64,000 bases of DNA, from the NCBI GenBank assembly GCA_002189035.1, contig NEEC01000010.1:1-64000 (forward strand), written 5' to 3'. The translations under genes were made by a program, and so were the position numbers. The notes under the pieces were generated by a model. That model searched no databases. It worked only from the letters and a program-made list of their open reading frames with translations, and had not been told where the DNA came from. Positions 6,001 through 56,400 of this stretch are shown here, piece after piece. This DNA is from Utricularia gibba. Taxonomy: Eukaryota > Plantae > Magnoliophyta. Each line of letters opens with the position of its first letter. Position 1 is the stretch's first letter.

Positions 6001-9000
6001 GAAGTTGTTTGGAAAAGAATTGGGCATCAAGGAAGACTGTTCAAATAGGCTCACGAAATTTGGAATTGGAGCAGTACGTGTGACTTGTGTTGCTCCACCA
6101 TTATGTGCGTCGATGGGTGTAGCGTGTTTGCGCAGTTTCACAAGGATACAGGGTGGCGAACAGTAGTTTGCAATAAGCATGAAGCGGGGGGTACCGCTTG
6201 TGCACAAAAAGCTATAAAAGCTGTCCTTGTGTAATTTCCCATGGGTATGAACCAGGTGCCGGGTTCACACGCAAGCCTTCCGGTGAATCTACGTGACGAT
6301 ATTCATTCCAAGCTCCGTTGGATAGTGCCACCCTCGATAGCCAGCATATCAATGCTATCTTGACAGGCTGCTGACGGGAATCGACAGTCCCCGAGCTCAC
6401 TTTTTGCTACATGGATTTAAAGAAGTTGAGTAGCTTATTTGTATGCAGAACACGAGAAGTCTCCATCCGTCGCAGAAAAGGGGCGTGGATAGATGTGAGT
6501 GTTGCCACTCCCTTCTCTGTGACCTTAAAATCCTATATTTGTGTGCTTCTTGCGGTTTGTCTTCAGACCGGAATGTCCTTCTTCGAGGTTCACTTCATTG
6601 TGGTGCACTCGGGTTGTTCCGCTTGTATTTCCTAACGAGAGGATATACGTTCGTGTCCTCCTTCACTTCATGGAAAGATGTGGAGCACGCAGCAGATTAT
6701 GGAGATTTGAAACAGAACACACATCACGAGGCAACCTAACGACGCAGCAACCAGCCCGACCTCGGTCTACCTGGAGCACCATCAATGAGCATGGCGTTGG
6801 AAGTGGCATACTCTACATGCAAAACGTAACCACCACCTCCTCTGACGTATGCTCGGTTCTCCTTGTAGGTGGAGTGGATGGTGGTCCTGATGACGCGCCT
6901 CCTACATGCACCTCGAACCACGCAGGTAATGCAAGCACACGCAACATCATGCGTCTTCACTCCACAGCAGGAGGCTCCATGCATGTTTCTAACAGCATCG
7001 ATCATTCGCTCCCCTTCATTTCGAGCTTCACGAGATGGCTGGAATACCATCGAAACCCTGCATATCTTTCCTGGAGCACCCGCCCAAGTGCGACAAAGCT
7101 CCTATTTTCTTAGGACATCCGCGTCATGGCCATTCTTCGTCTCAACTTGTTTTCCCAGAGTGGGCTCGAAGGCGACGATCCGTTAACATGCAGCAAAGGA
7201 AGCCAACACTCGCCAACAGAAGGTCACGCTTTGCGGAAACCATGCTCTCTAAAAGGCATTGCATAACAATCCGAACGAGCTCACCAGCAGGAACTCAGGG
7301 AACGTGAGTTGGGACATGATGAAAGGGAAGTATGAGGCGAATTCGCATTCCAATGTTATCACTATTTGCGATCCCAAAATTGAATCCAAAAGTTCGTAGC
7401 AGAGAGGCTGCAAAAAAACTACAGAAATCGGTTCTCGAAGGCCGTACCAGCATTCCAACATGAGGGGCACACGCAAAGGGATCCTTGGAGCAACAAACGG
7501 TGGTACGCATACGCGACCAGGGTTGCGCCCAAAGTCATCGATCCTGGATCGCGGCGTTGTGAACGTCGTTTTCACAATCGTGTAGCTGTGTAGAACCATT
7601 CAAGCTGTAGAATGCAAGGTGCGCCTACATGTCCGGTGGTTCGAAGGAGCGTTCATCCGCATGAGGTTTCTGCGAGTCCAAGGGTTGGAATGCAGTCAAT
7701 TAGCCATGGGAGTAAGAAAAAAAGACGAACAAGTCGAGAAACCCTCCAAAAAGGCGCGGTGTCTAGAACACCTCCTTTGAGAATGGAGGGCGGATGGAAC
7801 TTGCTCCGCATGCCGCGAATGGAGATATGCATACGAAAAAACACCAACATCGGGTCACCGACGTCGTTGCCAAGGAACTCTCTACAAGCACCGTGTGACG
7901 ACCTCCTTTGCAGCTATTGGATCCCCCTGCGGAGTGTCTCCGTACCTCGAAAAAAACGAGCTTTCTACGGTAGCTCGTTTTCAGGAGCGCATGGCTCTTA
8001 AAACTCAGCACGTGGATTCGCAATGATGGCAAGGGAGAGCACGTCCAATGGCGTAGTTACCGCGCCGCAATCGCATTCGAGGAGAAAAGAAGTTGTTTGG
8101 AAAAGAATTGGGCATCAAGGAAGACTGTTCAAATAGGCTCACGAAATTTGGAATTGGAGCAGCTGTACGTGTGACTTGTGTTGCTCCACCATTATGTGCG
8201 TCGATGGGTGTAGCGTGTTTGCGCAGTTTCACAAGGATACAGGGGCGAACAGTAGTTTGCAATAAGCATGAAGCGGGGGTACCGCTTGTGCACAAAAAGC
8301 TATAAAAGCTGTCCTTGTGTAATTTCCCATGGGTATGAACCAGGTGCCGGGTTCACACGCAAGCCTTCCGGTGAATCTACGTGACGATATTCATTCCAAG
8401 CTCCGTTGGATAGTGCCACCCTCGATAGCCAGCATATCAATGCTATCTTGACAGGCTGCTGACGGGAATCGACAGTCCCCGAGCTCACTTTTTGCTACAT
8501 GGATTTAAAGAAGTTGAGTAGCTTATGTTTGTATGCAGAACACGAGAAGTCTCCATCCGTCGCAGAAAAGGGGCGTGGATAGATGTGAGTGTTGCCACTC
8601 CCTTCTCTGTGACCTTAAAATCCTATATTTGTGTGCTTCTTGCGGTTTGTCTTCAGACCGGAATGTCCTTCTTCGAGGTTCACTTCATTGTGGTGCACTC
8701 GGGTTGTTCCGCTTGTATTTCCTAACGAGAGGATATACGTTCGTGTCCTCCTTCACTTCATGGAAAGATGTGGGAGCACGCAGCAGATTATGAGATTTGA
8801 AACAGAACACACATCACGAGGCAACCTAACGACGCAGCAACCAGCCCGACCTCGGTCTACCTGGAGCACCATCAATGAGCATGGCGTTGGAAGTGGCATA
8901 CTCTACATGCAAAACGTAACCACCACCTCCTCTGACGTATGCTCGGTTCTCCTTGTAGGTGGAGTGGATGGTGGTCCCGATGACGCGCCTCCTACATGCA

Positions 9001-10241
9001 CCTCGAACCACGCAGGTAATGCAAGCACACGCAACATCATGCGTCTTCACTCCACAGCAGGAGGCTCCATGCATGTTTCTAACAGCATCGATCATTCGCT
9101 CCCCTTCATTTCGAGCTTCACGAGATGGCTGGAATACCATCGAAACCCTGCATATCTTTCCTGGAGCACCCGCCCAAGTGCGACAAAGCTCCTATTTTCT
9201 TAGGACATCCGCGTCATGGCCATTCTTCGTCTCAACTTGTTTTCCCAGAGTGGGCTCGAAGGCGACGATCCGTTAACATGCAGCAAAGGAAGCCAACACT
9301 CGCCAACAGAAGGTCACGCTTTGCGGAAACCATGCTCTCTAAAAGGCATTGCATAACAATCCGAACGAGCTCACCAGCAGGAACTCAGGGAACGTGAGTT
9401 GGACATGATGAAAGGGAAGTATGAGGCGAATTCGCATTCCAATGTTATCACTATTTGCGATCCCAAAATTGAATCCAAAAGTTCGTAGCAGAGAGGCTGC
9501 AAAAAACTACAGAAATCGGTTCTCGAAGGCCGTACCAGCATTCCAACATGAGGGGCACACGCAAAGGGATCCTTGGAGCAACAAACGGTGGTACGCATAC
9601 GCGACCAGGGTTGCGCCCAAAGTCATCGATCCTGGATCGCGGCGTTGTGAACGTCGTTTTCACAATCGTGTAGCTGTGTAGAACCATTCAAGCTGTAGAA
9701 TGCAAGGTGCGCCTACATGTCCGGTGGTTCGAAGGAGCGTTCATCCGCATGAGGTTTCTGCGAGTCCAAGGGTTGGAATGCAGTCAATTAGCCATGGGAG
9801 TAAGAAAAAAAGACGAACAAGTCGAGAAACCCTCCAAAAAGGCGCGGTGTCTAGAACACCTCCTTTGAGAATGGAGGGCGGATGGAACTTGCTCCGCATG
9901 CCGCGAATGGAGATATGCATACGAAAAAACACCAACATCGGGTCACCGACGTCGTTGCCAAGGAACTCTCTACAAGCACCGTGTGACGACCTCCTTTGCA
10001 GCTATTGGATCCCCCTGCGGAGTGTCTCCGTACCTCGAAAAAACGAGCTTTCTACGGTAGCTCGTTTTCAGGAGCGCATGGCTCTTAAAACTCAGCACGT
10101 GGATTCGCAATGATGGCAAGGGAGAGCACGTCCAATGGCGTAGTTACCGCGCCGCAATCGCATTCGAGGAGAAAAGAAGTTGTTTGGAAAAGAATTGGGC
10201 ATCAAGGAAGACCGTTCAAATAGGCTCACGAAATTTGGAAT
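1..10241. repeat. Tandem array (megasatellite), ~2.09-kb monomer, 4.9 copies visible, continues beyond window start
   Basis: GCAAGCCTTCCGGTGAATCTACG recurs at 1, 2095, 4185, 6271 and 8359 (periods 2094, 2090, 2086, 2088). Copies differ only by scattered SNPs and 1-2 nt indels. The fifth copy stops at 10241. The short ORFs recur in every copy but none resembles a protein I recognise. Confidence 0.97.
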
Positions 10242-10747
10242 GACACAATTATATGAGATGTAATTGGTAAAGTGGATAAATTAAATTGAGAGTTATTTTG
10301 AGATTAATTTTGATTAAACTTAAAATAAAAGATCATATATAGATAAGATTTGGAACATATACATATCTCCACAAATAAGATCTTTACGGAGATATGATTT
10401 GATATGTTACCATATATCTATCAAAAAGATTTAGATCTTGACATATGCTCCATGGGTCTGCGTGCTCTCTGAGACGAATCCACAAGGAGGTGTTTTTCTC
10501 CACTAGTACCTGAGGAATTCAACCAGCATTCAAGAGCCTTGAGAAGGTTATCGACGAAGTGCTCCACGTGTGGATGCCATAGAGGCCATCTCCTATTGGC
10601 GGTTGGTGAACAACGGAGTCATCTGAAAGGTATTTCAGCATCCCTTAGTCTGATGTATACCGTATTCCAAGATCTGCGTTGGGGGTTTCTCAAAATTTTA
10701 AAATTCCGCTGCTTTTGAGAGATACGATGTCTACGAGAAACCCAACA
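10238..10747 (+). mobile_element. 5'-truncated 5' LTR of a Ty1/copia (Angela-like) retrotransposon
   Basis: Ends ...GAAACCCAACA at 10747, immediately before a PBS. Matches the reverse complement of the LTR copies starting at 33085 and 42732, and the forward copy at ~61090-61602. Confidence 0.9.
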
Positions 10748-10760: not shown

Positions 10761-11848
10761 GAGGTTGCGGAATACGTGTATACGTTAGAATCTTTGTTGA
10801 TTTTGCGAGATGTTCTCGTATGTCGCCTTGTCGGTGAAAAGTTAAAATCTTTGCTGATTTGCGAGATGTTCTCGTATGTTGCCTTGCCTGCGATTATTGT
10901 GATAGCATGTGATTGCGAGATGTTCTCGTATGTAGCCTTGCTGACGATCATCATAATAGCATGTGATGCACGAAATCTGATTATTTTGGATTGTTTTGCT
11001 GCCTTAGGATGCACAAAATTTGATTCATGATTGATGCTTTCGAGAATCATATCTTACGTGTATATGCGCAGCATGATGATGCTTTATATGTGTGTAGTCG
11101 TGGGGCATGATGGCCTTTGCACGAATTTTGATCATGTTGATCATATTGGTGAATTATCGATGCATATGATGTTTGATAATTTATTTGTGACCAAGGCATC
11201 TAGGGTCAATTAGGATTTTCGAGCTTTATGTGTGAAAATCCAGGGATATGATGCGTTATGAACGAAAGGGCAAGGGTTGTCAAGATGCCTATTTGATAGG
11301 ATATTGATATCCATAATGCAAGAGTTGCATATGGAAAAATCCCCTTCTAAATAATTAAGCTTATTCCTTCCACTAACATAAGGAGAACGAGAGTCATTTT
11401 TAGTGTATAGAGTTGTTGGCTACCGTCAAGCTCTCCACTACACATGACATGTTCGAATTATGGAATTAGATTCACGGTGGGTTGGCTTAACTGATTTTAT
11501 CAACTTGTTGACTAAAGCCAAGGTTGGTAAAATTGGAGGAAAGGTTGAGGTAAATAGTTTTTACATTAAGAGTTGATGACTCAATGATGCAGTGGTTGTA
11601 TGAGAGATACAATTGGCATGAGATGACTACCTGTTTCATTCATTAAAACTTGTTGGCTACAGTCAAGGTGGAGATGAATGAAATGGGACACTATCCCACT
11701 AAGAAAATCTGATTTTCTCATTTTGTCAGTAAGGGGCTGCCATCTCGAAAAACATAGTGGGAGTATATCACATCTAATAAAGACCAATTAAATGTGATTT
11801 AAGGAACACTACATGATGTGTTTGCTTTCTCTTCTTCAGGTTGAAGAT

Positions 11849-12852
11849 ATGTCTTCCAGCGTGAATTTGAGATCCATTCTAGAGTCCAACAAGTTGGTTG
11901 GCTCGAATTTTACTGATTGGCACCGCAATCTGAGAATTGTTCTCAAGGCGGAGAAGATTGCTTACATCCTTGAGCAAGATGTTCCTGCACAACCCAGGGC
12001 TAATGCAGCTGAAGATGTTCGGCGTGCATATCAGAAGTATCTAGATGATGCTGAGCTTGTCTCCTGTATCATGCTTGCTTCGATGGCACTTGATCTCCAA
12101 AAACAGCATGAGGCGATGACTTGCCAACAAATGATAACACACCTCAAGGATCTGATTGGTGAGCACACACGACTTGAAAGGTTCAAGACATCAAAGCTGT
12201 TGTTCAATTGTCGCTTGGTAGAAGGATGTTCTGCTGCTGATCATGCGACATTGATATTGAGTTGCATTTAGAAGTTGTCCACTCTTGGTTTTGTGTTGGA
12301 TAAGGACTTGAGTATTGACTTAATCCTTACCCCACTACTTGATAGCTACTCACAGTTTGTGATGAACTATCAGATGAACAAGATGGATCAAACTGTTCCT
12401 CAATTGATTCAGTTACTCAAGTCTGTTGAGACAACTATCACAAAGGAACAAAAGAATGTCATGCTTGTCTCTTCAAGGAAAAAGGTTTCCAAGAAGAAGA
12501 GTCAAGACAAGAAACTCAAAGCTAAAAGTAAGATCAAGAAGAAGAAGCCTGTTGAAAAACCGGCTAAGGGTGAATGCTTTCATTGTGGGAAATCTGGTCA
12601 TTGGAAGAGAAACTGCAAAGCCTATCTAGAGTCAATCAAGGGCAAGAAGCAGAATGAGAATTCAGCTTCAGGTATACACATGATTGAGATTAATACTACT
12701 ATCAAGAATGGTTCTTGGGTGTTAGATTTTGGTTGTGGTGCTCACATTTGCACTAACATGCAGGACCTAATGAGTAGTAGAAACTTGAAGAAAGGCGATG
12801 TTGACCTAAGAGTTGGGAATGGTGCAGGAGTTGCTGCCATGGCAGTTGGGAC
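11849..12852 (+). pseudogene. Copia gag + protease (degenerate)
   Basis: MSSSVNLRSILESNKLVGSNFTDWHRNLRIVLKAEK is an Angela-type gag start. Also present: zinc knuckle CFHCGKSGHWKRNC and protease-like WVLDFGCGAHIC. In-frame TAG at 12269-12271. The frame ends at an inversion breakpoint at 12852. Confidence 0.9.
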
Positions 12853-14211
12853 AAGAAGTAGTATCCCATGGTTTCTTGTGGATATCCCAGAAAGAGACAC
12901 TTGTCAGATTTGTTCTCCAACTTATCTGACTTCAACCTTCTTACATAAGCAGGGCATCCCCAAGCTTTGAGGTAGGAGAAACTCGGTTTTCTACCAGTCC
13001 AAATCTCATAAGGAGTGGTTTCAACCGATTTCGATGGGGCTTTTTTCAAAACATGAGCTGCTGCCTCTAAAGCATATCCCCACATGGACTTTGGTAGTTC
13101 TGCAAAACTCGTCATGGATCGAACCATGTCAAGCAAAGTTCGATTTCTCCTCTCAGAAACAACATTGTGCTCAGGTGTATTAGGAGGAGTTCTTTCTGAG
13201 ACAATACCATTGTCCTTGAGATGATTCTTGAATTCATTACTCAAGTATTACCCACCACGATCTGATCGAAGTTTCTTGATGGAACGCTCAAGCTGGTTCT
13301 CGACCTCCATCCGAAACTCTTTGAACTTTTCAAAGGCTTCAGATTTTCGTTTCATCAAGTAAATGCGTCCATATCTTGAATGATCATCTGTAAAAGTGAT
13401 GAAATACGAGAAACCCCCTCTAGCAGTGATGCTCATTGGACCGCATACATCAAAATGTATTAAATCCAATAAGTTTTCAGCTCTTGCTCCTTTTCCAAGA
13501 AAAGGTTGCTTTTTCATTTTTCCCAATAAACAAGATTCGCATGTTTCATAAGATTCAAAATCTTCTAAGTCCAAATATGCCAATCGATATAAGTACTCAA
13601 CACGCTTCTTGTTTATATGGCCTAAATGACAATGCCAGAGGTAAGAATTCAAGACATTGTCAATCCTTGGCCTTTTTATGCACATGTTAATCTGTTCCGA
13701 ATCATGATGATCCAAAACATATATTCCGTTTACTATCGTAGCAGTACCAAATGCACATTCCCTCGTCGTATGGAACAACAATTGTTCTTTATAGAAAACT
13801 CGAAACCAATCTTGTCCAAACAAGAAATAGAGACGATGTTCTTAGACAATGAAGGAACACAATAAACAGAATCTAATTCAAGAGATAATCCAGAAGGTAG
13901 GGCGATGTGGCAAGTCCCAACTGCCATGGCAACAACTCGTGCACCATTCCCAACTCTTAGGTCAACATTGCCTTTCTTCAAGATTCTACTACTCATTAGG
14001 TCCTGCATGTTAGTGCAAATGTGAGCACCACAACCAAAATCTAACACCCAAGAACCATTCTTGATAGTAGTGTTAATCTCAATCATGTGTATACCTGAAG
14101 CTGAATTCTCATTCTGCTTCTTGCCCTTGATTGACTCTAGATAGGCTTTGCAGTTTCTCTTCCAATGACCAGATTTCCCACAATGAAAGCATTCACCCTT
14201 AGCTGGTTTTT
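12853..14211 (-). pseudogene. Inverted copia segment: zinc knuckle-protease-GAG-pre-integrase-integrase
   Basis: The minus strand encodes CFHC knuckle, WVLDFGCGAHIC, LWHCHLGH...CESC, FITFTDDHSRYG, LRSDRGG*YLSNEF, SERRNRTLLDMVRSM and KCLFLGYPQETMGYYF. There is a frameshift near 13750 and a premature stop near 13248. Confidence 0.92.
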
Positions 14212-19472: not shown

Positions 19473-22257
19473 ATGATTAGTAATACCTCTCAGGCCTACC
19501 TACAAAGTAGATGTGTCTCCGAAACCAAGGCCCTCATCGCGGATCTCTGCCGTCAATTCTATCATCTGGGCTGGGTATCTGGAACTGGCGGCAGCATCAC
19601 CGTCAAAGTTCACGATGATTCCATTCCCAAAGCCCAACAGCTAATTGTCATGTCCCCCTCAGGTTCCTCCTCATCTTTAGGCGATTTTCGGACTTCCCAG
19701 GGTATCAACGATGCGTTTTCTTTCGTCTGTTTTGTAGGTGTGCAGAAGGAAAGGATGGTGGAAGAGGATATGTATGTGCTGTCCTCTGATGGTCACCTGC
19801 TGACTCAGCCTTCATCCAAACCTTGGCCGCATAAGCCACCTAAATGTTCTGATTGCGGACCGCTTTTCATGAAGGTATTAAAATACCTGACTTGAGTCAC
19901 CACCTTCAAGCTTCGTCCATCTTGTTCACTCTTACTGTCGCTATTCATTTAGCACAATATCATTGGATGCTCATCCCCGTGTAAAATCTTCTTGCTTCAA
20001 TACTTTGATTTCGTGGTCATTTGTCTGAACAAGCAGCTCCAGCATCAGTTGAAAAAGAAAGCTGGCGGATAAGTAATGAAATTCATCTTGCTTTGCATGT
20101 TTTTTATCTTGCATTATCTTTGTCCTCATGGTAATGCTGAATGGTTCCTTGAATATGTAATTCAATATTCCAAGCGCTATCATGTACTTTAGGCATACGA
20201 AATGGGTAATGCTGGGGCTGTCATTCACAGCCATGGTATGGAATCTTGCCTTGTCACGATGCTCAATCCATCTTCAAAAGAATTTCGGGTATGGATTTGT
20301 TCTTTAATCATGAAGATGAAAGTTGGCATTATCTATAATCCCTAAGATCCTTCGTTCTTTTTCTTATAGATTACCCACATGGAAATGATAAAAGGAATTC
20401 AAGGCCATGGATATTATGATGAACTTGTTATCCCAATCATAGAGAACACTGCACATGAAAGAGAGCTCACAGATTCTCTTGCAGATGCAGTACACTCGTC
20501 TTTCCTGCCTAGAAACTGTGTATACTTTTGATGTAAAATACAAACTTCATCACTTGATAGAACCATTTTACTAAAACATTGCAGATTATAGCTTACCCAA
20601 AGGCCACGGCTGTGCTGGTCCGCAACCATGGAGTTTATATATGGGGGATTCCTGGATCAGTGCAAAGACACAGGTGGTTTTTCAGGGGTTAATATATGTT
20701 AGGAACACATTTTTATGTGCTTGTCGTCAACTTCTGTGATAGTGATCATTCGTCCAGAACTATCTATCCTGTTCCCATCCTGAGTTTTGTTTTTTTAGAG
20801 GCATGAAATTGGAAAAGTGCTTCTTATGTCATTCCACCTTTTATGTTTGTACATTTTTTCATTTGCAAATTACATGTCCAGGCTGAATGCTATCACTATC
20901 TCTTTGATGCTGCCATTAAACTTCATCAATTAGGATTAGACTGGTCATCACCATCCCATGGTCCGATTGATCACTCAAAGGGGTTCGGAGGAAACAACTG
21001 GAACCCAGAGTGTTTGCAAAAGGAAAGGCTTGTGAGGAAGATAGTCACCCACCTAATGTGAGTACCATAGCCCTTTGATGTTACATAATGAGATATCGGC
21101 CACTACTACTTATTCTTGATTGAATAAAATTGGCCAACTGCAGCGCTGCATTTTGCTGGACATTGAAGGAACTACTACTCCTATTTCATTTGTAACAGAT
21201 GTTCTTTTTCCATATGCTCGTGACAATGCTGGAAAGCATTTGGAATTAACATACGATTCTTCAGAAACACAGGATGATATCAAGATGCTCATTGCTCAAG
21301 TGAGATGGCAATCCGGAATATCACATTTTCCCATTGCATTAAAAGTAATCGTTACACATTTTCTTGGATCAGATACATGAAGATCTTGAGAAGGGAATTG
21401 CTGGAGCAGTTCCCATCCCCTCCAATGGAAAGAAAGAGGATGAAATAGCTGCTTTGGTGGCTAACGTACAGGCTATGATCAAAGCTGATCGGAAGATTAC
21501 TTCACTAAAACAACTGCAGGTTTTATGGAAAATGATCTGGCTTATTATGGCTTTTGAGCTTCTAGTATTCAAATTTTTCTGTTTCATCCTCAGGGTCATA
21601 TATGGAAAACAGGGTTTCAAAGGAAGGAGATTGAGGCAATTGTATTTGATGATGTGCCTGCAGCTCTTGAAAAATGGACTGCTCTTGGAATTAAGGTTAC
21701 TCTTGCGCTCCTTTCTGTGCTCTACTTATAGGAAGCACCATTTTTAGTGAATGTGTTTTCGTTTTAGGTTTATATATACTCCAGTGGTAGCCGGTTGGCC
21801 CAGAGGCTCTTGTTCAGCAACACGAATTTTGGAGATTTGAGAAAACATCTCTCGGGTTTTTTCGACACCACTGTCGGGTAAGCTAGTTCTGACGAGATAG
21901 CAATTATAATTAAAATTTGCTTCCCAACTCTGGGTCCGTTTGCCCTTCTCACTTTTAACAACACGTCTGCTGGTTCAGTAACAAGAGAGAAACAAAAAGC
22001 TACAAAGAAATCACCGAGTCACTTGGGGTGGATAACCCATCCGAAGTTTTATTCATCACCGATGTCTACCAAGAAGCGGCAGCTGCGAGTGCAGCAGGTA
22101 TCCAGGAAGTAGTTTCTCAACTTTTGCTTATTTTGGTGATGATCATCCGCACATATGTGTTTCAGGATTGAATGTCGCAATCACTGTACGACCTGGTAAC
22201 GGACCTCTCCCAGAAAATCATGCATTCAGGACAATAAGGTCCTTCTCTGAAATCTAA
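19473..22257 (+). CDS. DEP1: Bifunctional methylthioribulose-1-phosphate dehydratase / enolase-phosphatase E1 (methionine salvage), 12 exons
   Basis: Exons 19473-19662, 19738-19874, 20193-20288, 20370-20489, 20585-20673, 20882-21057, 21144-21299, 21373-21519, 21594-21695, 21768-21877, 21979-22097 and 22166-22257, all GT-AG. MtnB motifs: [38 protein letters not shown] motifs: [18 protein letters not shown]. Stop TAA at 22255-22257. Exons 5 and 6 are each 1 nt short. Confidence 0.95.
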
Positions 22258-39928: not shown

Positions 39929-41428
39929 CCTTGAGCTTTTGAGTTATCTTGATTACTTTTCAGGAAAATCTGAACTTTCCGACATTGTTTTTCTGAGTAT
40001 GAAAATGTCTGAGACACAATTGATTTCTTTTATTATTCATGCCCCATTACTAGAGTTAAAAACCCTACTTGAGCATTTAAAGTCTTGTTGACAATGAGAC
40101 TTTACCTGTTATTGTCTCTAGTACACTAATCCTTGAATAGGAGAAAAAACTCTAGAGTGTGCTTCAGAAGCACAAACAGGCAACAAAGCCAATTCGCCAG
40201 TCTCAAAGGAGATTGAACCATCCAATGATTGAAGTGGTCAAAAAGGATATTCTTAGGTTGTTGATGGTATGTATAATCTATCCTATTTCGAATAGTAAAT
40301 GGGCTAGCCCTGTGTAGGTTGTCCGAAGGAAAACATGGATCACAGGTATGGCCAATGACTAGGGGTAAATTCTTCCTAAAAGAGTGCATAAAGTTGAACA
40401 CAGCCACCAAGAAGGATCACTACCCACTTCCATTCTTTGACCAGATGCTAGAAATACTTGTTGTAAGGAGCCACTACTGTTGCTTGTATGGTTACTCCAG
40501 TTTCCATCAAATACCCATGACCCTTGAAGACCAAGCAAATGTTGTTTTTGTTTGTCCTTTTGGTACTTTTGCTTACCATAAAATGCCTTTTGGATTGTGC
40601 AATGCACAAGCAACATTTCAACACTATGGGGTTAGTATTTTTTCAGAATATGTTGAAAACATTATTGAGGTTTTTATGGATGACTTCACGGTTTGTGGAA
40701 ACAGTTTTGATGAATATCTTGATAACTTGTCACTACTTTTGAATTGATGTATTGAGACTAACCTTATTTAGAATTATTAGAACAAAGGTATCATTTTAGG
40801 ACATTTTTCTACCAAAGGGGAATTGAGTTTGATAAGACGAAGATTGAGGTAATCCAAAAATTACCTTACCCCATTCTTGTGAGAGGTGTACATTTTTTCC
40901 TTGGACATGTTGGACTTTACTGTAGATTTATTCAGGATTTTTTGAAAATTTCATCTCCTTTGTATACTTTATTGCATAAGGATGTTGAGTTTCATTTTGA
41001 TAGAGATTGCAAAAAAGATTTTGATGTTTTGAAAGAAAGGCTTGTCTCACCTTCCATTATTCATGCTCTAAATTGGAGTCTACTATTTGAACTAATGTGT
41101 GATGCAAGTGATGTAGCTCTAAGTACAGTTTTGGGACAAAAGGTGCAGAAGAAATCTCATGTTATCCACTATGTATCCAAGTGCCTTGATGATGCCCAAA
41201 AGAGCTACACCACAACAGAAATGTTGGAGATTGTGTTTGCCTTGGAGAAATTTAGATCTTATTTCTAGGAGCAAAAGTTATAGTCTAAATCAAAAGCCCG
41301 AGAGCTCGTAACCGATAACGAAACCCAGTTTGCTGAAGGAAAGATTGATGCTTTTCAAGACAAGTTTTAGTCAAGCACAACTTCACTTCGGTTTATCATT
41401 CTTAGAGCAATGGCCTCACAGAGGTAAC

Positions 41429-47400: not shown

Positions 47401-50400
47401 GATCTCCTACCCATTTTCAGAAAAAGGAAAGAGGAACCTAACCCAGGAGCCAAGCAAAGCCAAGAATGAGAGAAGAAGTTAGAAGGAGAGAAGGGAGTCT
47501 GGAAGAACCTTAAAGAATCGAATGGAAAAGATGAAAAAACGACTAATACCTGAAAGATTTGCAGTTTCCGACGAGTTTTACGGTGGCGTAGGTGGGGGAT
47601 GAACACGAGGGAGCACAGGTAGTGCGGAAATCAAGTGAACAAAGGGAGCAAAGGGAAGAAATGATGGGAGAAGCACGCATTTACAGAGGAGGTATTCGGG
47701 AGACGAAATGGCACGTTGTTTGGGGTGCCTAGAAGGAGCGGGAAAACGAATTGTGGCGTGGAGGTCGACATAAAATGGGTGGAGATTCACTCACGGGAAA
47801 GCGGCATGCCCGAAATCGGTATAGTAGTAATTCTGATCCACCGACTTGCCCCAAAAGGGCCAATATCGATAAATCAGAGGGGCTGAATGATAGGGTACAA
47901 ATCGAATGAGTATAATCGGCCTCTAAAAAGCTGCCAAAAGGTGCTCTTATGGGATAGCACAAAACAATAGACCGATAATTGTCAGAATCTATCAGCAGCA
48001 GCTGTTTTGCGTAGTTTTAAAAGTGATCGAATTACAGCAGAGCAGATGGCGGTTTTCTGAAAAGTAGGATTACAGCATAGGCGCAGAAAGCGACCAACAA
48101 TCATAGAAATCAGGATTCGGTCAAATCGACCTCATCTATAAGTAGGAGAAGTCCTGAAAGGAAAAGGGTTCAACTCTAAGCCCTGCAACCTGTATTTTTC
48201 CCCACGCCCGTCTAGCAAAGGTATTTTCTGGTGAGTTCCGTTAGTTCCGTGGTTTTTTCGTTCTCCAACGATTTCCACGTAAAAAATCTTTGTCCTTCTT
48301 TGTTTTCGTTAAACGCACTAAGCATAAAACCCATACCTGAGTTCGACGCCTCTGGGCGAACTCCACAACACGAAAATCGGTTCCGACCCCAGTGCTAATT
48401 TTCGCCCTTAACAATGTCAAAACCTAATTGGTTATTAGCATATCTATGTGTGGTACTTGTTCTTGCTCCCTATTTTCTGAGTTATTGTCCCTTTATTTAT
48501 TTATAATTCAGGTGCTAAAAATGAGGTGTCCACATCTAGGAATTTAGGGTAATACTGTCAGATTTTTTTTTCAAAATTCTTTATCAAAATAATTGGGATT
48601 TTTTTTATTGTGAAAATATCTGTTATTTTAAAATTAATATTTTAAAATAACAGATATTTTCCTTATTTTTTTGTTTTGATGAAATTATTTTTTAATATAT
48701 ATTTTATTTTGAAATATTTCTTTCATATTTTTAATTAAATATTTTAATTCTATCTCCGTTACATATTTTCAGTTAAATATATTATTTAAAAATAAAATTT
48801 TTTCACACCTATAAATATCATTTAAATTTCATTATAAACTAAATATACCTTTAAATGATTATGTTTATAGAATACTATTTCCTTTTATAAATATACCTAA
48901 TATTGAGATTGGGGGAAACAAAATAAATCAACTTATGTAATAGAGTCTACTACCACACTATTGGAGAGACTAGATGAAGTTTTCTTTCACTTTTTTCTTA
49001 ACTCGTTTAAGTAAAAAAATCAGAAAGTTTTTTCTGGCTTCTAAACTTGTTCTAATTTACTAAATCATTATTTTCTTATTCCGAATGTCTAATTACCCAA
49101 CAATACAAAAATCATAAAATCAATGCTTATAATGTGCAAGTGCATTTACAGATTTTTGAAATTCAATTATATTCATATTTGAAAAAAACATTTATTTATT
49201 AAAATCGCATTTAATGCCTAGTAAAATAAAACATCATAATCAATGATGGTGCAAATGGAAAAAATAAGAGCTAACTCGGGGAACAATAAATAAAGCCAAA
49301 TAATTCAATTTAAAAAAATACAAATAGTTAATAAAAAGGAATTTATGTAAAAAAATGAACAAATACAAGTATTTTAACAAAAATACAAGATAAAGCAGGT
49401 GATTTGATTAAAAATTCTACTCACACAGATATTTTAATAAAATAATCGTCCCATAATCACTTTTCTAATTAAATCAGTTAATTCTACAGATTCGATAGTT
49501 AATTAAATTATAATTAATGTATGAGGACGGGAATCATAATCAAATGTATGACATGGGATTTTATTATTAAATTCCTTTGTATTTTTCATATTTTATAGTT
49601 GAGCAGTACAAATATAGTCCAAATAAATCAAATCAGTCTGAGAAATTTCCAGAAAAGAAGTGTGTGCCTAGCAAAAATGGGACGCTTGACTGGAACCGAG
49701 CACTAGACAGACACTCAATCAGTACTGAACGTTGGAGGGTCATTCGGTTGTCCGAATGAAGCTCAATTGTCAATCAATCTCTTGATCGATTGAAGGTCAC
49801 TTGGTAGGTAGGAAATCGCTCAATCAGTATTGAGCGAATGGTTGGGTAGAACACACCCAATCAATATGAGATGATGCACAATGCATCGATCGATTGGGCA
49901 ACGCTTACAATGGTTAATGCAATGTCGGTTCAGAGCGTGTTGAGTGTTACCAAGTGTGGGGGAGGTAGAAAGACATACAGAGAGATGCATTCTGATGGGC
50001 CTAACTAATTGGCCCAATTTAATTTCATCTTTTTGGAATATTATTCGTAATGGACAGTGAAAAATGTTGGAAGGAATTTAGAAGGAAAATTCTCCAAATT
50101 CTTTTCAAAAGTCTTTTCGTAATAAAGTGGAGTTTTATAGAGATTTGATCTACCAAATGACTTAAATGCTTATGCACCTCTTTTTTTTTTCTTTTTTCTT
50201 TTTTTTATTTGGCTTCGCTTAACGTGGTATTTGGTTGCTGTCTTCTTCAAGTTTGTTTATCTTTCGAAGCGGTTGATGTCGTTTTGGTAATCTATTTTAG
50301 AGGAGTCCACCGATCTTTCCCAAAAATATCTCCAGGATTTTTTTATAGCCCTCAAAATGTTGGCCATGCATACCCTAAACCATGCACATGATGATCTTTG

Positions 50401-51425
50401 CTTGTAGTAGGATCAGATAGATCATTTTACTAAAAAAATATTTTTGATGTATTTTTGTATATGTACTGTTGGTAATTTTTTGTTTTAGAAAAGTGTACAT
50501 TTTGTTATAAGTTTGTTTTCTTTATATATATGATGAATGTTTTTGTATGGTTTAAGTATTTATATCTCAAACATAAAAACAATGTGTGGGTAATTAGCAT
50601 ATTTATGTCGAGGGAAGTTGACTAGAGCTCCAAGTTGTAAAGAATCTATCAGGGTTGACAAACAATAAAGGAGATTAAATAATGTAGTGCGAGTCCGTAT
50701 TTGGTGGAATCGAAATGAATTTAATTTCTTATGAGAAGCAATAAAGATCAACGGCGAAACATGACATTTTCCCACCCTTGATTTACCGTAACAATTTGTC
50801 CTTGTGTTCCTACAATTCATTCTTAATTATGCAGCATGATGATTTTCTGCTCCTTCCCTTCCTGAAGTAGTTGACTAAAATAATAGGGCATATGAACTGA
50901 AATATTCGCATGCTTAAATAATGATAATGCTCACCAAATGCATTAAGAAAAAGGAATCAATTGCTTGCCTCGACTCTAAACAGTAGAGAAATCTAACTTT
51001 TAGTCGTAATTTGTATTCCTAATTTGGATTTGGTGTGCGAGCCACTGATTTATGGGAAATTAAGATGGGTTGCTTCTTATGAAATCACATAAGAAAGAGT
51101 ATGACTAGCTTGTTTGTATGCTTTCCCCTTCATCTAGGGCGAATCGTATGAGAGCGAGTTAATTGTAGTCTATAGGATTTTGATGACTAAAGTGAAAGCA
51201 TCGTGAAGTCGTAATCATCTCTTCGTCATTTTTATTTATTCAAACTTTCTCCTTGTCATAAGTCAAAATCAATTTCCCTCAACTCAAGGGAATAACTGAG
51301 GAGCGTGGCTATGATATGATTTTCAAGAGTTCTCATTCGAGTAGGTTTCAAGTGAAGTTATGTGTAATGTTAATGAGTTTAATTTAAATGCTAAATAGCA
51401 TTCAAACCTGCTCTTGGCAGCCACA

Positions 51426-53423
51426 ATGTTCTCATTTCTTACTAAGAATCTCATACTCCTCTTCATTTTCATGCTTTTGCTCTTTAGCCAACAATTCGAT
51501 GGTGCCCTCTCACATGAACAAGATCCACACGATGATAGCGATCATATGGAATTTTACAAGTTCATCAAATGCCATGTTGGTAAAGGTAATATTTGTCATG
51601 GACTTGTAACATTCCATGGAAAAGAGCGTTTTTATTGTTGTAATTCTCATTGTTGTGATGTGCTTAGTGACACAAACAACTGTGGTGTTTGTGATCATAA
51701 GTGCAAGTCTGGAGAGAAATGTTGCAATGGGATCTGCAAGAACATTAGAAGCGATAGTAACTATTGTGGAAGTTGTTGGAATCGATGCAAGTCAAGTGAG
51801 AGATGCTGTAATGGTAATTGCAAAAGTCTTACACAAGATAAAGATCATTGTGGCACATGTGGCAATAAGTGTATGTTGAATGAAAGATGTTGCAGCGGAA
51901 TTTGCACCAACATTACAAGTAACAAGAATAGTTGTGGTAGTTGTGGTAACAAGTGTGATTCGAATGAAATATGTTGCAGTGGACATTGTAGGAATGTTAA
52001 GAAGCACAACAACCACTGTGGCACTTGTGGGAATGGATGTAAGTCTCCAAATGTATGTTGTGATGGTATTTGTAGAAACTTTAGTATAGATAATGACCAT
52101 TGTGGAAATTGTGGAAATAAATGTGGTCCTGAGCAAAGATGCTGCAATGGACAATGTAGGAAAATAAAAAAGGACAATAAGCACTGTGGAAGTTGTGGGA
52201 ATGGATGTAAGTCTCCAAATGTGTGTTGTGATGGTGTTTGTAGAAATTTTAATATAGATAATGATCATTGTGGAAGTTGTGAAAACAAATGTGGTCCTCA
52301 TAGAAGATGCTGCAATGGACATTGTAGGAATGTTAAGAAGCACAACGACCACTGTGGCACTTGTGGGAATGTATGTAAGTCTCCAAGCATATGTTGCGAT
52401 GGTGTTTGTAGAAACTTCAATATAGATAATGACCATTGTGGAAGTTGTGGAAACAAATGTGGTATTCATAGAAAATGTTGCATTGGACATTGTAGGAATG
52501 TTAAGAAGGACAACGATCACTGCGGCAATTGTGGGAATGGATGTAAGTTTCCAAACGTGTGTTGCAATGGTGTTTGTAGAAATTTTAATATAGATAATGA
52601 CCACTGTGGAAGTTGTGGAAACAAATGTGGTCCTCATAGAAGATGTTGCAATGGCCATTGTAGAAAAATTAAAAATGATGATAAGCATTGTGGAAGTTGT
52701 GGAAATAATTGTGCCTTAGGGTTCAAATGCTGCAGTGGAATTTGCAAGAATGTCAAAAGTGACATCAACCATTGTGGTAATTGTGGCAATAAATGTAAGT
52801 TTAATCAAAGGTGCTGCAATGGAGAGTGTAGGAACATTAACAAGGATAACAAGCATTGTGGAAGTTGTGGGAATGGGTGTGCTTTAGGGTTCAAGTGTTG
52901 CAATAAAGTTTGCAAAAATATTCAAAGCGACAACAATAATTGTGGTCGCTGTAAGCGCAAATGCAAGTTAGATGAGAGATGTTGCAATGGAAAGTGTATG
53001 AAGATTAAATCAGATTGTGGCATATGTGGGAATGGGTGCAAGTCACGAGATGAAATATGTTGTGATGGGGTTTGCAGAGTACCTAAAAAGGACAATAAAC
53101 ATTGTGGTCGTTGCAACAATAAATGTAAGTTGAATGAAAGATGTTGCAATGGACATTGTAGGAATATTAAAAATGATAGCAATCATTGTGGAAGTTGCGG
53201 GAGACGTTGTGCACCAGGTTTCAAGTGTTGCAATGGAGTTTGCATAAATATTAAAAACAATAACAATAATTGCGGTCGTTGTAAGCGGAAATGTAAGTCG
53301 GGGCGCACTTGTTGTGATGGCAGTTGCAAGAATCTCTTTAAGGACAGGAACAATTGCGGGCAGTGCAACAAAAAGTGTAATCCGGGTGAGAAGTGTGAGA
53401 ATGGATTTTGCGGATATGGATGA
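51426..53423 (+). CDS. Secreted STIG1-family cysteine-rich protein with 21 tandem modules (665 aa, single exon)
   Basis: ATG at 51426 with a hydrophobic signal peptide (MFSFLTKNLILLFIFMLLLFSQQFDGALS). Two N-terminal Cys, then repeats of CC-x3-C-x9-CGxC-x3-C-x5, then a STIG1-type tail, KCENGFCGYG*. No stop or frameshift in 2 kb. Confidence 0.92.
   Translation: MFSFLTKNLILLFIFMLLLFSQQFDGALSHEQDPHDDSDHMEFYKFIKCHVGKGNICHGLVTFHGKERFYCCNSHCCDVLSDTNNCGVCDHKCKSGEKCCNGICKNIRSDSNYCGSCWNRCKSSERCCNGNCKSLTQDKDHCGTCGNKCMLNERCCSGICTNITSNKNSCGSCGNKCDSNEICCSGHCRNVKKHNNHCGTCGNGCKSPNVCCDGICRNFSIDNDHCGNCGNKCGPEQRCCNGQCRKIKKDNKHCGSCGNGCKSPNVCCDGVCRNFNIDNDHCGSCENKCGPHRRCCNGHCRNVKKHNDHCGTCGNVCKSPSICCDGVCRNFNIDNDHCGSCGNKCGIHRKCCIGHCRNVKKDNDHCGNCGNGCKFPNVCCNGVCRNFNIDNDHCGSCGNKCGPHRRCCNGHCRKIKNDDKHCGSCGNNCALGFKCCSGICKNVKSDINHCGNCGNKCKFNQRCCNGECRNINKDNKHCGSCGNGCALGFKCCNKVCKNIQSDNNNCGRCKRKCKLDERCCNGKCMKIKSDCGICGNGCKSRDEICCDGVCRVPKKDNKHCGRCNNKCKLNERCCNGHCRNIKNDSNHCGSCGRRCAPGFKCCNGVCINIKNNNNNCGRCKRKCKSGRTCCDGSCKNLFKDRNNCGQCNKKCNPGEKCENGFCGYG
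51636..53393 (+). repeat. Coding tandem repeat, 84-nt unit x21, with a 168-nt higher-order dimer
   Basis: 1758 nt = 20 x 28 aa + one 26-aa unit. Units 5-12 alternate between RNVKK...CKSPNV-like and RNFNIDNDH...CGPHRR-like types. Confidence 0.95.
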
Positions 53424-56400
53424 TTATAATATTCATATTTATCTTTTGATAATGATTGTGAAGGATTATTTATCTTCTTATTCATGTGAACAATGTACTC
53501 GTAGTTACTCCACTCACATAAATGGTTATTTAGTTAGGAAATAATTATAGTAATAGTGCGTATCTTGATTGTATTCTATTGTAATGTCTGATACTTGTTT
53601 CCAATTTATTTGTTAGGGGATGGATTTCATGATCACTAGTTTGGGTTAGTGCATAATTTTTTTATTCTTTATTCTAATTCGACTTCAATAGGTGAGTTAT
53701 TTGTATTAAGTAGAAACATCAGTCTGATTAGTGGTGTATATTATCACCATCCTTTAAATTTGAATAGCTCACCACAACAAGCAACTTTGTAGTTAGCACC
53801 CACTAGTTCAAGGGAACTCTAAAACTCCATAATTTTCCTGAAACCATTATCTACTTGGTCTTTGGTGTTCTTTTTTTTTTTTAGCAGAATTTATCTATTT
53901 TCAGTACTTGTGAGGAACTTAAACGATTAATTGATATAGTGTCATTTTCAAAAAGTTTCTTTTCTTGAATACATTATGAATAATAGTGAAATTGCAATGA
54001 AGAAGGGAAGGTCATCACAATCAACAAGTATCAAAACCCAACTATAGTAGGAAAAATCCGAACCCTTCATGGCTCGACCAATTTCCATTATGGGTTTGTC
54101 AAACATTTTAACACCCACCTCACATCACTGCATGAATTAATCAAGAATATGTTCAATTTCAATTGATAGTAATCACAGGACTATGTTTTCAAATATTTTT
54201 AAGATAATCTAACTTTGCACCTTTAATTGCATTGTATGATATTTCTAGAACATTTTAAATTTAATATGATGCTTCTAGAAAAGGAATTTTATACATAATT
54301 TTTTAGTGCGAGGAGGCTAGCCTATAGCATACATTAATGAAAAGTTTGGTGGAGAGCCACACCCAAATATCCAATATAGGATAATGAACTCCATTTATTT
54401 GACACCTCTTACTCATATTTCAATACATATTATGGTCGAAAAAATTCCATTCTAAAGATGTTCAAATTTTTAAGGTCTTTTAATTTTAAGTATTGTTCAC
54501 ATTCTTGTGAAAAGAAAATTGCACCTATTGGCACTAGATAAAAAGATCCACTAAGAGCAAGAATTTGAGGTGAAGACCTTAGTAAAGTGGTTGCATACTA
54601 TTGTAAGAGTTGCATGAAACTCAACTTGTAGAAAGCTATAGGAAAAGGAGGTTTTTGCATTCTTCTCATGTATTTCTACAAATATGAATATAAACAATAC
54701 GTGAGAATGCAAGTGGGTAATTAGAAAAGAAAGCCCTTTTTAAGTAGAGGTGTTAGAGCTCTCACATAGTTGTTGGAGGATGCCACTTTCCTTCCTGGAA
54801 TCTTATGAATACAAACATCTTTAGCAATTATACGTCGAAGATGATAAGGAAAAAATATCATATAGCATAATTGCAATGCCCAATAACATTGTTAGCCATT
54901 GCAAAAGGAACATAGGAACCATCTTGTTGTGGTTAGGAAATTTCTCTTCCACAAGCATTCAAATTTTTGTAATTTTTCATTTGAGTTCTATGTTTGTGAT
55001 TGTTTCTTTCTTATGATTAAGTAATAACATGAAGAATAGTAACCCTAGTCGATTTTCTTTTCTGGCTGACTGTTCAAGTATATCCTCCGACGGTAACAAT
55101 TTGTAATATCCCTTTTTTGAAAAGATCTCATGGGGATCTCGATACAGTGTGAAGTGTCATGTGGAATACTTGGTTTTTTATTTGGTGACGGTTCATCAAC
55201 ATTTATTGGAATACTTGTTCGTGTAGTGTTGTCATGCTATTCATTAAGAATGCCTGTATTGGGTTTACTTGAAAATAGATATCATGAAACCCCTTAGCAT
55301 AAAGTGCAAAATGCCTAGTTAGAAAGAGCCTAATGATGCAGAGAAATTCTTCCAACTGTCATGGGTCAATAAATCTTTTCTCTTCAAAACATTTACAAAT
55401 AAAGAAAATCAACAAATATTGAACAAAAAAATAAATCAAGTGTAGGTTAATCAAAAGATAGTGTTGTGATTTTGCTGTAAGTTCTATGCATAAGCTAGGT
55501 TAAACAAGGGTTAATTAAAATGTATTGAAGTGCAGGTAATGATGACGTTTATGAAATAAGTCACTTCAAAAATTAATTTCAAAGGAGTAAATACATAAAA
55601 GAAAATAATAATTTGATTGAGTAAAATTACTAAGCAATACTTGCTAACCATTTTTATTGAAAATCACATGTACTCATTTAGAGCTTGTAAACACATGTTG
55701 AATTTAAAAGTTACTACCACTAATACAAAAGTAAATATTTCAACAAAAATAGGAGTTAAGAGACTATTTCAATTCTTTTTCTTCTTCAGATATATCAATG
55801 ATAGAAAAAATCTCCTCATCCTTTTTGTTCCCTAGAATCCTTCTTCTTTCCGTAGGTGCACAGCACCAACACTGTAGTCCTCATCCCTGTTTTCCTTCCC
55901 CCTTAGGTCGCACCCTTTTTTTCACCTGTTTTCTTTTCTCTTTCAGCTTCTTGCCGAATCTTGTTTTTGCTACTGAATTTATTTTCATGTAGTGAATTAC
56001 ATGTTCAGCAAACAAATACTTTTTGATGGGACAAACCTTTAGTTTGCAAAACCTAAAGAAATTACCAACCATCAAGTTCCATTGCTAGGGAGTTAGGTGC
56101 TTTTTAGTTATTGTTGCTATGCGTTCTTTTGCAAGTGAAAGTCTTTTCCCATTTAATCCAAAGATTTAGAAAACCACAAGAGACCAATAGAAAAGTGCAA
56201 AGGAGAAGACGAATCAGGCAACCAAAAAGGGAGCCATTGCACACGAATCAACCGTGGACACAAATGATGTAAGAAAACAGTGTAGGAATATTATTATCTA
56301 GATTATTCTTATCACATAATCTTCATCGATTTTCCAAAAGAAGCAACTACATTTGTTCTCCAACTAGGGATAATCAATCTTTTACCAAAATTTTTGGAAA

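Follow-up and report, generated by a model that had tools for sequence, protein, structure and literature searches.

In the plant STIG1 family, which includes tomato and tobacco STIG1, Arabidopsis GRIM REAPER (GRI), the STIG1-like proteins 1-4 and KERBEROS, the STIG1-LePRK2 pair has been studied in pollen tube growth and the GRI-PRK5 pair in cell death. Tomato STIG1 is reported to bind the ectodomains of LePRK1/2 and phosphatidylinositol 3-phosphate, PI(3)P (PMC6275014 and its reference 72). GRI gives rise, via metacaspase-9, to an N-terminal 11-aa peptide (GRIp) acting on PRK5 (PMC6547358, PMC12122906), while KERBEROS is required for the endosperm-derived embryo sheath (PMC8207604). The usual small size of these proteins (~140-180 aa, 16 conserved Cys) is not that of the protein described here, a 665-aa STIG1 protein encoded at positions 51426-53423 of the forward strand in the first 64,000 nucleotides of contig NEEC01000010.1 from Utricularia gibba (hereafter the window). 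We consider it likely, with a probability of roughly 60%, that this is a real, expressed and selectively maintained GRIM REAPER-like gene in which one Cys-rich module has been repeated 20 times, and that its product is a secreted, stiff, multivalent extracellular rod, whose action we infer.

The open reading frame (ORF) list and its translation gave an intact single-exon coding sequence running from an ATG at 51426 to a TGA at 53421-53423, the nearest preceding stop in the same frame lying at 51396. Among 20 shuffled versions of the window the longest stop-free run was 186 codons, and the next longest non-overlapping ORF of the window, a retrotransposon gag fragment, reaches 231 aa. No second copy of the gene was found in the window by tblastn. 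The Pfam Stig1 profile (PF04885) matched the product in 11 stretches with 395.7 bits against a cut-off of 24.1 (E = 6e-121), the best stretch aligning residues 599-664 with profile positions 19-84 of 85. The BLASTP comparison covered canonical Stylosanthes, Arachis, Humulus and Stephania proteins that measure 154-182 aa, two of which are named GRIM REAPER(-like). The head (residues 38-113) was 51-53% and the tail 50-54% identical to these proteins, with all Cys residues aligned. The canonical layout consists of a head with five Cys, one full module with six and a tail with five, and here the full module is present 20 times. The pro-segment, which links the signal peptide to the first Cys, falls about 21 aa short of its length in GRIM REAPER-like proteins (21 gap positions against the 160-aa Arachis protein) and is devoid of the SRFL...KKG stretch present in the canonical relatives. 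The profile match, the head and tail alignments and the modelled fold described below support membership in the plant STIG1 family, within its GRIM REAPER-like branch. They bear out the family assignment of the first-pass annotation, which had been made from the letters of the DNA, and the ORF, hydropathy and Pfam results likewise uphold the intact single-exon frame, the signal peptide, the 131 Cys in 665 aa (~20%) and the STIG1 tail that it had described.

When split at CGxC, the array contains 20 full six-Cys modules, of which 18 measure exactly 28 aa and the other two 25 and 29 aa, followed by a 22-aa tail with five Cys, whereas a register starting at CC yields 21 six-Cys units. The 21 tandem modules of 28 aa initially reported are therefore found in the latter register, but in the former there are 20, of which 18 have exactly that length. 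All six Cys columns and G2 are invariant in the 18 regular modules, and G17 shows a single exception (Lys). In the head, Cys residues occupy positions 49, 57, 71, 72, 76 and 77, one more than in canonical proteins: at C76/C77 (window 51651-51656) GRI-like members have a C followed by an R. This extra residue accounts for the odd Cys total of 131 and, speculatively, a single thiol might be left unpaired and free for an intermolecular bond.

A four-module AlphaFold2 model, built on a 79-row alignment of module runs, reached a predicted local distance difference test score (pLDDT) of 94.4 and a predicted template-modelling score (pTM) of 0.75, with one beta-hairpin per module; an eight-module model gave a pLDDT of 93.2 and a pTM of 0.66. 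Neither model displayed a dip in confidence at the module junctions, where the inter-Cys stretch had pLDDT values of 94-98, which suggests that the array could form a continuous rod, not beads on a string. Using Foldseek, the four-module model matched the AlphaFold structure of each of the seven reviewed plant STIG1/GRI entries (143-174 aa, E = 2e-8 to 6e-7). The closest was Arabidopsis GRIM REAPER, with a root-mean-square deviation of 0.6 Å and 44% identity over 64 aa, both sides being predicted structures, and superposition on most reviewed plant members gave 0.6-1.2 Å. The modelled modules also superposed on the tomato and tobacco STIG1 models. No solved structure resembling the module was detected in the PDB by sequence, by Foldseek (best E = 0.58) or by a wide VIA-align search (no Z ≥ 2), and the STIG1 family as a whole has no experimental structure.

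To describe how the array is built, modules were compared at the DNA level, where their identity ranges from 50 to 92%. Tandem Repeats Finder (TRF) returned periods of 84, 168 and 336 nt, the period of 168 with 85% matches, and a direct-repeat family spaced by 84/168 nt extends across the array. Type A modules start at residues 198, 254, 310 and 366 and are 87-92% identical to each other; type B modules start at residues 170, 226, 282, 338, 394, 450 and 560, and type C modules at residues 422, 478 and 588. Their order is (B A) four times, then (B C)-like pairs. Same-type copies in the core are 81-92% identical in DNA, and between residues 170 and 421 units lying 56 aa apart are 83-89% identical. 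This pattern of alternating types and of identity between 56-aa units fits stepwise unequal crossing-over of two- or four-module units. Judged from this repeat structure, one internal module of a canonical protein of ~160 aa has evidently given rise to the 20 copies by repeated unequal crossing-over; most amplification steps evidently involved units of two (168 nt) or four modules, with the ancestral signal peptide, head and tail retained. The identity of 50-54% between head and tail and their counterparts in canonical GRIM REAPER-like proteins indicates that amplification was confined to the one internal module. The roughly tenfold module expansion originally put forward is real.

Core type A modules have a net charge of -1 or 0, while core type B modules are basic, at +4 or +5, except for the first (residues 170-197) at +2. 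Each core type B module also carries 3-4 His, except for the second (residues 226-253), which has one. Charge alternates along the array because near-neutral type A and basic type B modules alternate, and the successive net charges along residues 198-421 are -1, +5, -1, +4, -1, +4, 0 and +5.

Analysis of selection relied on differences among the modules themselves. For types A, B and C, the pooled ratio of nonsynonymous to synonymous differences per site (pN/pS) was 0.20, 0.34 and 0.30, respectively. Synonymous divergence between same-type copies ranged from 0.16 to more than 1, and the corresponding ratio of substitution rates (dN/dS) was mostly 0.08-0.46, with one pair at 0.57. About 5.1% of the single-base substitutions open to the ORF introduce a stop codon. 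Neutral divergence of 0.1-0.3 per site should have produced 10-31 stop codons and removed 31-72 Cys codons, and neither a stop nor a lost Cys codon was observed. Both lines of evidence support the view that purifying selection maintains the array, as far as the coding sequence can tell, and agree with the selection initially suggested for it. The sole variant seen in the RNA contigs described below, a C>T change at 51893, is synonymous (TGC to TGT).

These data also bear on the idea that the array is a recent expansion, confined to its lineage and largely or wholly without function, a weakly transcribed by-product of unstable tandem DNA heading to decay. The gene-poor and transposon-rich region, the low RNA depth, the lack of a known ortholog or annotated homolog of more than 50% identity and the absence of the protein from protein collections would all agree with it. 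However, the copies are not young (synonymous divergence of 0.16-0.7 and more), no stop, frameshift or Cys loss has accumulated over a time in which some 10-30 stops are expected, and pN/pS is 0.20-0.34. We consider this explanation improbable.

Next, the authenticity of the DNA was considered. Sampled 31-mers of the ORF were present in DNA runs at fractions of 0.97, 0.82 and 0.62, in three samples of the same organism from two studies. The GC content of the ORF is 37.8%, and 32.7% at third codon positions (GC3), compared with 33-36% in the flanks. An artefact, whether an assembly expansion, bacterial contamination or the recent horizontal transfer of a Myxococcota-type repeat gene, might be evoked by the top-scoring database matches, which are bacterial or metagenomic arrays, and by the NCBIfam MXAN_6577-like model (NF041328), which scores 161.2 bits for a cut-off of 100. 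That match reflects the shared module, as the model defines a subfamily used in naming bacterial proteins, and direct membership is disfavoured by the base composition and by the plant-type head and tail. We regard such an origin as barely credible. Firstly, an assembly error would yield identical copies, whereas those of the array have diverged to 50-92% identity; together with the recovery of 62-97% of the words in independent DNA runs of the same organism, this counters the assembly expansion feared at first. Secondly, bacterial contamination and recent transfer are excluded by the GC3 of 33%, in agreement with the plant flanks, by the plant retrotransposon fragments in the window and by the plant GRI-like head and tail, 50-54% identical to their canonical counterparts against at most 50% for any other match.

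Transcription was assessed from runs labelled as RNA, five of which contain 5-19% of the ORF words. Seven contigs from four of these runs (two studies) were placed on positions 50000-55500 and all fell within the ORF. They measure 179-279 nt, with a word depth of 3.5-5.9 and at most one mismatch. No contig from the four runs was located in the 1.4 kb upstream or the 2.1 kb downstream, and no splice joint was present in the seven contigs. A gap in their coverage at 52.2-52.8 kb corresponds to the most repetitive part of the array, which breaks short-read assembly. Low-level transcription of an unspliced message is thus probable, and the lack of expression that the first-pass annotation had named as evidence against its reading is not what we found.

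The predicted product, of about 70 kDa, is strongly positive, with 105 Lys and Arg for 54 Asp and Glu (net charge of about +51), and is composed of 19.7% Cys, 14.3% Asn, 11.6% Gly, 10.5% Lys, 5.4% Arg and 4.8% His (32 residues); it contains three N-glycosylation sequons. The putative signal peptide was called from Kyte-Doolittle hydropathy, with an approximate end near residue 25. The mean hydropathy rises to 3.57 in the core at residues 8-20, and Kyte-Doolittle windows revealed no second hydrophobic stretch further on (maximum 0.73), so that the product is predicted to be secreted and soluble.

In the proposed mechanism, the mature protein of ~70 kDa, made up only of disulfide-knotted modules with one beta-hairpin each and devoid of a membrane anchor, would be secreted and would work outside the cell as one continuous, stiff, multivalent and polycationic rod. 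Its partners would be anionic or repeated, such as de-esterified pectin, phosphoinositide-bearing membranes, microbial surfaces or the ectodomains of PRK-type receptors. The protein could then act as a matrix, adhesion or defence scaffold and not as the precursor of a GRIp-type hormone peptide, a role that may be disfavoured by the shortening of the pro-segment, which is the source of the peptide in Arabidopsis GRI. By analogy, the precedents within the family, namely an extracellular sheath for KERBEROS (PMC8207604) and receptor ligands (PMC6275014, PMC6547358), are compatible with a rod of this kind, and the rod reading is also favoured by the Myxococcota arrays, in which the module adjoins other extracellular domains. 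More tentatively, and we would still bet against it, a peptide-hormone or ligand precursor may have been converted into a new extracellular material: a ~70 kDa rod with ~65 disulfides and alternating charge, possibly cross-linked via the unpaired Cys, and serving adhesion, a sheath or surface defence.

Several observations weigh against the secreted rod and the gene behind it. The RNA runs had been picked for holding this stretch and are labelled 'RNA?', their depth is low (~4-5) and their contigs are short and without strand; no TATA box is present within 400 nt upstream of the ORF; the gene stands alone among transposon debris; and both the disulfide connectivity and the stiffness of the putative rod are read from model confidence values.

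The same modules could also be seen as a polyprotein precursor, cut at basic residues between modules to release about 20 small six-Cys antimicrobial or signalling peptides. Plant multi-domain Cys-rich precursors are known to be cleaved into several peptides in this way, for example Impatiens Ib-AMP and the Nicotiana proteinase-inhibitor precursors, and cationic Cys-rich peptides are typical plant antimicrobials. The protein has 16 dibasic sites, many of them in the stretch that separates the final Cys of a module from the first Cys of its successor (for example RNVKKH and RKIKKD), and GRI itself is processed by a protease cutting after basic residues (PMC12122906). Such processing is mildly disfavoured, since the modules follow each other without linkers and with a junction confidence above 90: no separate linker or propeptide exists, the whole 28-aa period being conserved module with pLDDT values of 94-98 at the junctions. 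Moreover, type A modules are devoid of dibasic sites, which would make the cutting irregular, and in large bacterial proteins arrays of the same modules stay uncut. A polyprotein is therefore unlikely in our view.

Metal binding or redox buffering, with reduced Cys and His chelating metals in a metallothionein-like manner, is suggested by the Cys content of 19.7%, by the 32 His (3-4 per type B module, with one in residues 226-253) and by the copper-binding MopE repeats that the Atlas lists beside Stig1 in some bacterial clusters. This function is very improbable, because the signal peptide directs the protein to the oxidising secretory pathway and because six invariantly spaced Cys per module, in a confident model of a STIG1-like hairpin knot, fit disulfides and not free thiols.

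The coordinates of the gene, of its parts and of the RNA contigs are collected in the following table.

Table 1. Features of the repeated STIG1 gene of Utricularia gibba, in window coordinates.
Feature	Position	Strand	Evidence
Complete single-exon coding sequence, 665 codons + TGA	51426..53423	+	ORF list, Pfam, RNA contigs without splice joints
Putative signal peptide, ~residues 1-25: Lys7, hydrophobic core 8-20, polar end FDG	51426..51500	+	Kyte-Doolittle hydropathy
Short pro-segment, acidic and His-rich, residues 26-48	51501..51569	+	BLASTP against canonical proteins
STIG1 head, residues 49-85: C-x7-C then CC-x3-CC	51570..51680	+	51-53% identity to canonical heads
20 complete six-Cys modules, residues 86-643, pattern CGxCGxxC-x5-CCxGxC-x9	51681..53354	+	Module split, column conservation, TRF
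Youngest core of the array, residues 170-421: alternating types A and B, two-module units of 168 nt	51933..52688	+	DNA identity, TRF, charge
STIG1 C-terminal tail, residues 644-665, five Cys, end CGYG	53355..53420	+	Pfam, BLASTP
Span of the seven short RNA contigs from four runs	51569..53289		Contigs placed on 50000-55500

Around the gene, no Pfam domain was found in the neighbouring ORFs between 45 and 63 kb, and no Rfam family in the window. The hypothesis of a transposon cargo was rejected, as the stretch from 44 to 60 kb showed neither inverted nor long direct repeats on either side of the gene. Antisense ORFs of 298 aa (window 51792-52688, minus strand), 110 aa and 100 aa have no Pfam match. 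The simplest reading is that they arise from the repeat itself, because a Cys codon read in reverse complement gives Thr or Ala and never a stop.

Elsewhere in the window, positions 1-10400 hold a tandem macro-repeat with a unit of ~2.09 kb and at least five copies, many segments of which are 100% identical and the first of which crosses the window start. TRF misses it because its period exceeds 500, and the ORFs of 190-222 aa that it contains have no Pfam match. Fragments of a Copia-type retrotransposon occupy positions 11813-13823, with a gag zinc knuckle at 12275-12970 (plus strand) and integrase and GAG-pre-integrase domains at 12753-13823 (minus strand), opposite orientations that point to nesting or rearrangement of elements. 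A 140-aa ORF at 19473-19895 carries a class II aldolase/adducin N-terminal domain (E = 4e-9) and may be a host gene exon or a gene fragment. A reverse-transcriptase fragment (RVT_1, E = 1.4e-7) at 40319-40747 is a further sign of transposon debris.

To evaluate the rarity of the array, the protein was searched against 1.84 billion cluster representatives, which gave 3757 matches at E ≤ 0.001 and 54 at E ≤ 1e-30, none of them more than 50% identical. The 665-aa protein itself was not found in the protein collections, and its exact look-up in assemblies returned no record. A query with the N-terminal 169 aa had no match in a word-index search, a method too insensitive for such a composition. All named angiosperm matches measure 134-182 aa, the full set of annotated angiosperm relatives with a name spans 134-188 aa, and in a search restricted to 365-1160 aa the sole match from a plant-scale chromosome was a moss protein. 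Among AlphaFold DB clusters, a plant-named 202-aa entry matches four modules with a template-modelling score of 0.89; plant-named 'STIG1' entries of 429 and 610 aa gave gapped matches and, by these unconfirmed alignments, look like several separated domains and not a contiguous array. The literature search for a multi-module plant STIG1 protein returned no paper. Since this very gene is missing from protein databases, perhaps through tandem-repeat masking before gene calling, the lack of a database entry says little about rarity; should masking be the true reason, genes of this kind might go unnoticed in the genomes of other plants.

The best database matches are Myxococcota or metagenome proteins of 700 to more than 2200 aa, the top long ones coming mostly from metagenomes or metagenome-assembled genomes. 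With a loose module pattern, the best among 279 fetched relatives were found to hold 22 (P0126), 21 (P0139) and 19 (P0132) contiguous modules, with a wider spacing and inside larger multidomain proteins, and many Myxococcota and metagenome proteins carry arrays of 13-22 such modules. The U. gibba protein has the highest Cys content when compared with these 279 relatives and consists of modules only. In Atlas clusters from Myxococcota, the Stig1 module is joined to peptidase M66, fibrinogen-C and other extracellular domains. In plants, the moss Ceratodon purpureus encodes two proteins, KC19_5G113300 (341 aa) and M758_10G087300 (470 aa), with ~5-9 modules. The early statement that no STIG1 protein of this size had been described can be kept for flowering plants, where no annotated array was found, but not beyond them, as such arrays are common in Myxococcota and metagenomes (up to 22 modules) and shorter ones exist in mosses (~5-9). 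The architecture, known in bacteria and in a shorter form in mosses, thus appears new for annotated flowering-plant proteins.

A natural 20-fold concatemer under purifying selection shows that the six-Cys core works as an independent unit that can be stacked, in plants no less than in bacteria, and that the STIG1 family can be recruited for something beyond a monovalent ligand. The protein also offers a ready test object for the module fold, for the disulfide map and for whether the Cys-rich core itself binds a partner.

Compared by description, the Ib-AMP and proteinase-inhibitor precursors resemble this protein in having small Cys-rich units in tandem behind a signal peptide, with basic residues between the units; their sequence is unrelated, and they have distinct cleavable linkers, none of which is evident here. 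The MXAN_6577-like proteins of Myxococcota have in common the six-Cys module in long tandem arrays (up to 22 contiguous) and a similar predicted module fold. Unlike the U. gibba protein, they are G+C-rich, usually 700 to more than 2000 aa long, with extra extracellular domains, a wider and irregular module spacing and no plant head or tail, and their identity is at most 43% for the best matches listed. The C. purpureus proteins are closer in being from a plant, secreted and endowed with several tandem STIG1 modules, the 341-aa protein having in addition a CGYG-type tail with 49% identity over the last 79 aa; they differ by their ~5-9 modules, a long non-Cys N- or C-terminal region and an overall identity below 50%. 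Finally, the canonical STIG1 family shares the signal peptide, the acidic pro-segment, the single exon, the Cys pattern of the head (C-x7-C...CC-x3-C), the module CGxCGxxC...CCxGxC and the tail CxxCxxxC-x5-C-x4-CGY[AG]. From this common plan the U. gibba protein departs by its 665 aa, 131 Cys and 20 full modules, instead of 143-174 aa, 16 Cys and one full module, and by a shorter pro-segment without SRFL...KKG, an odd Cys count and a net charge of about +51.

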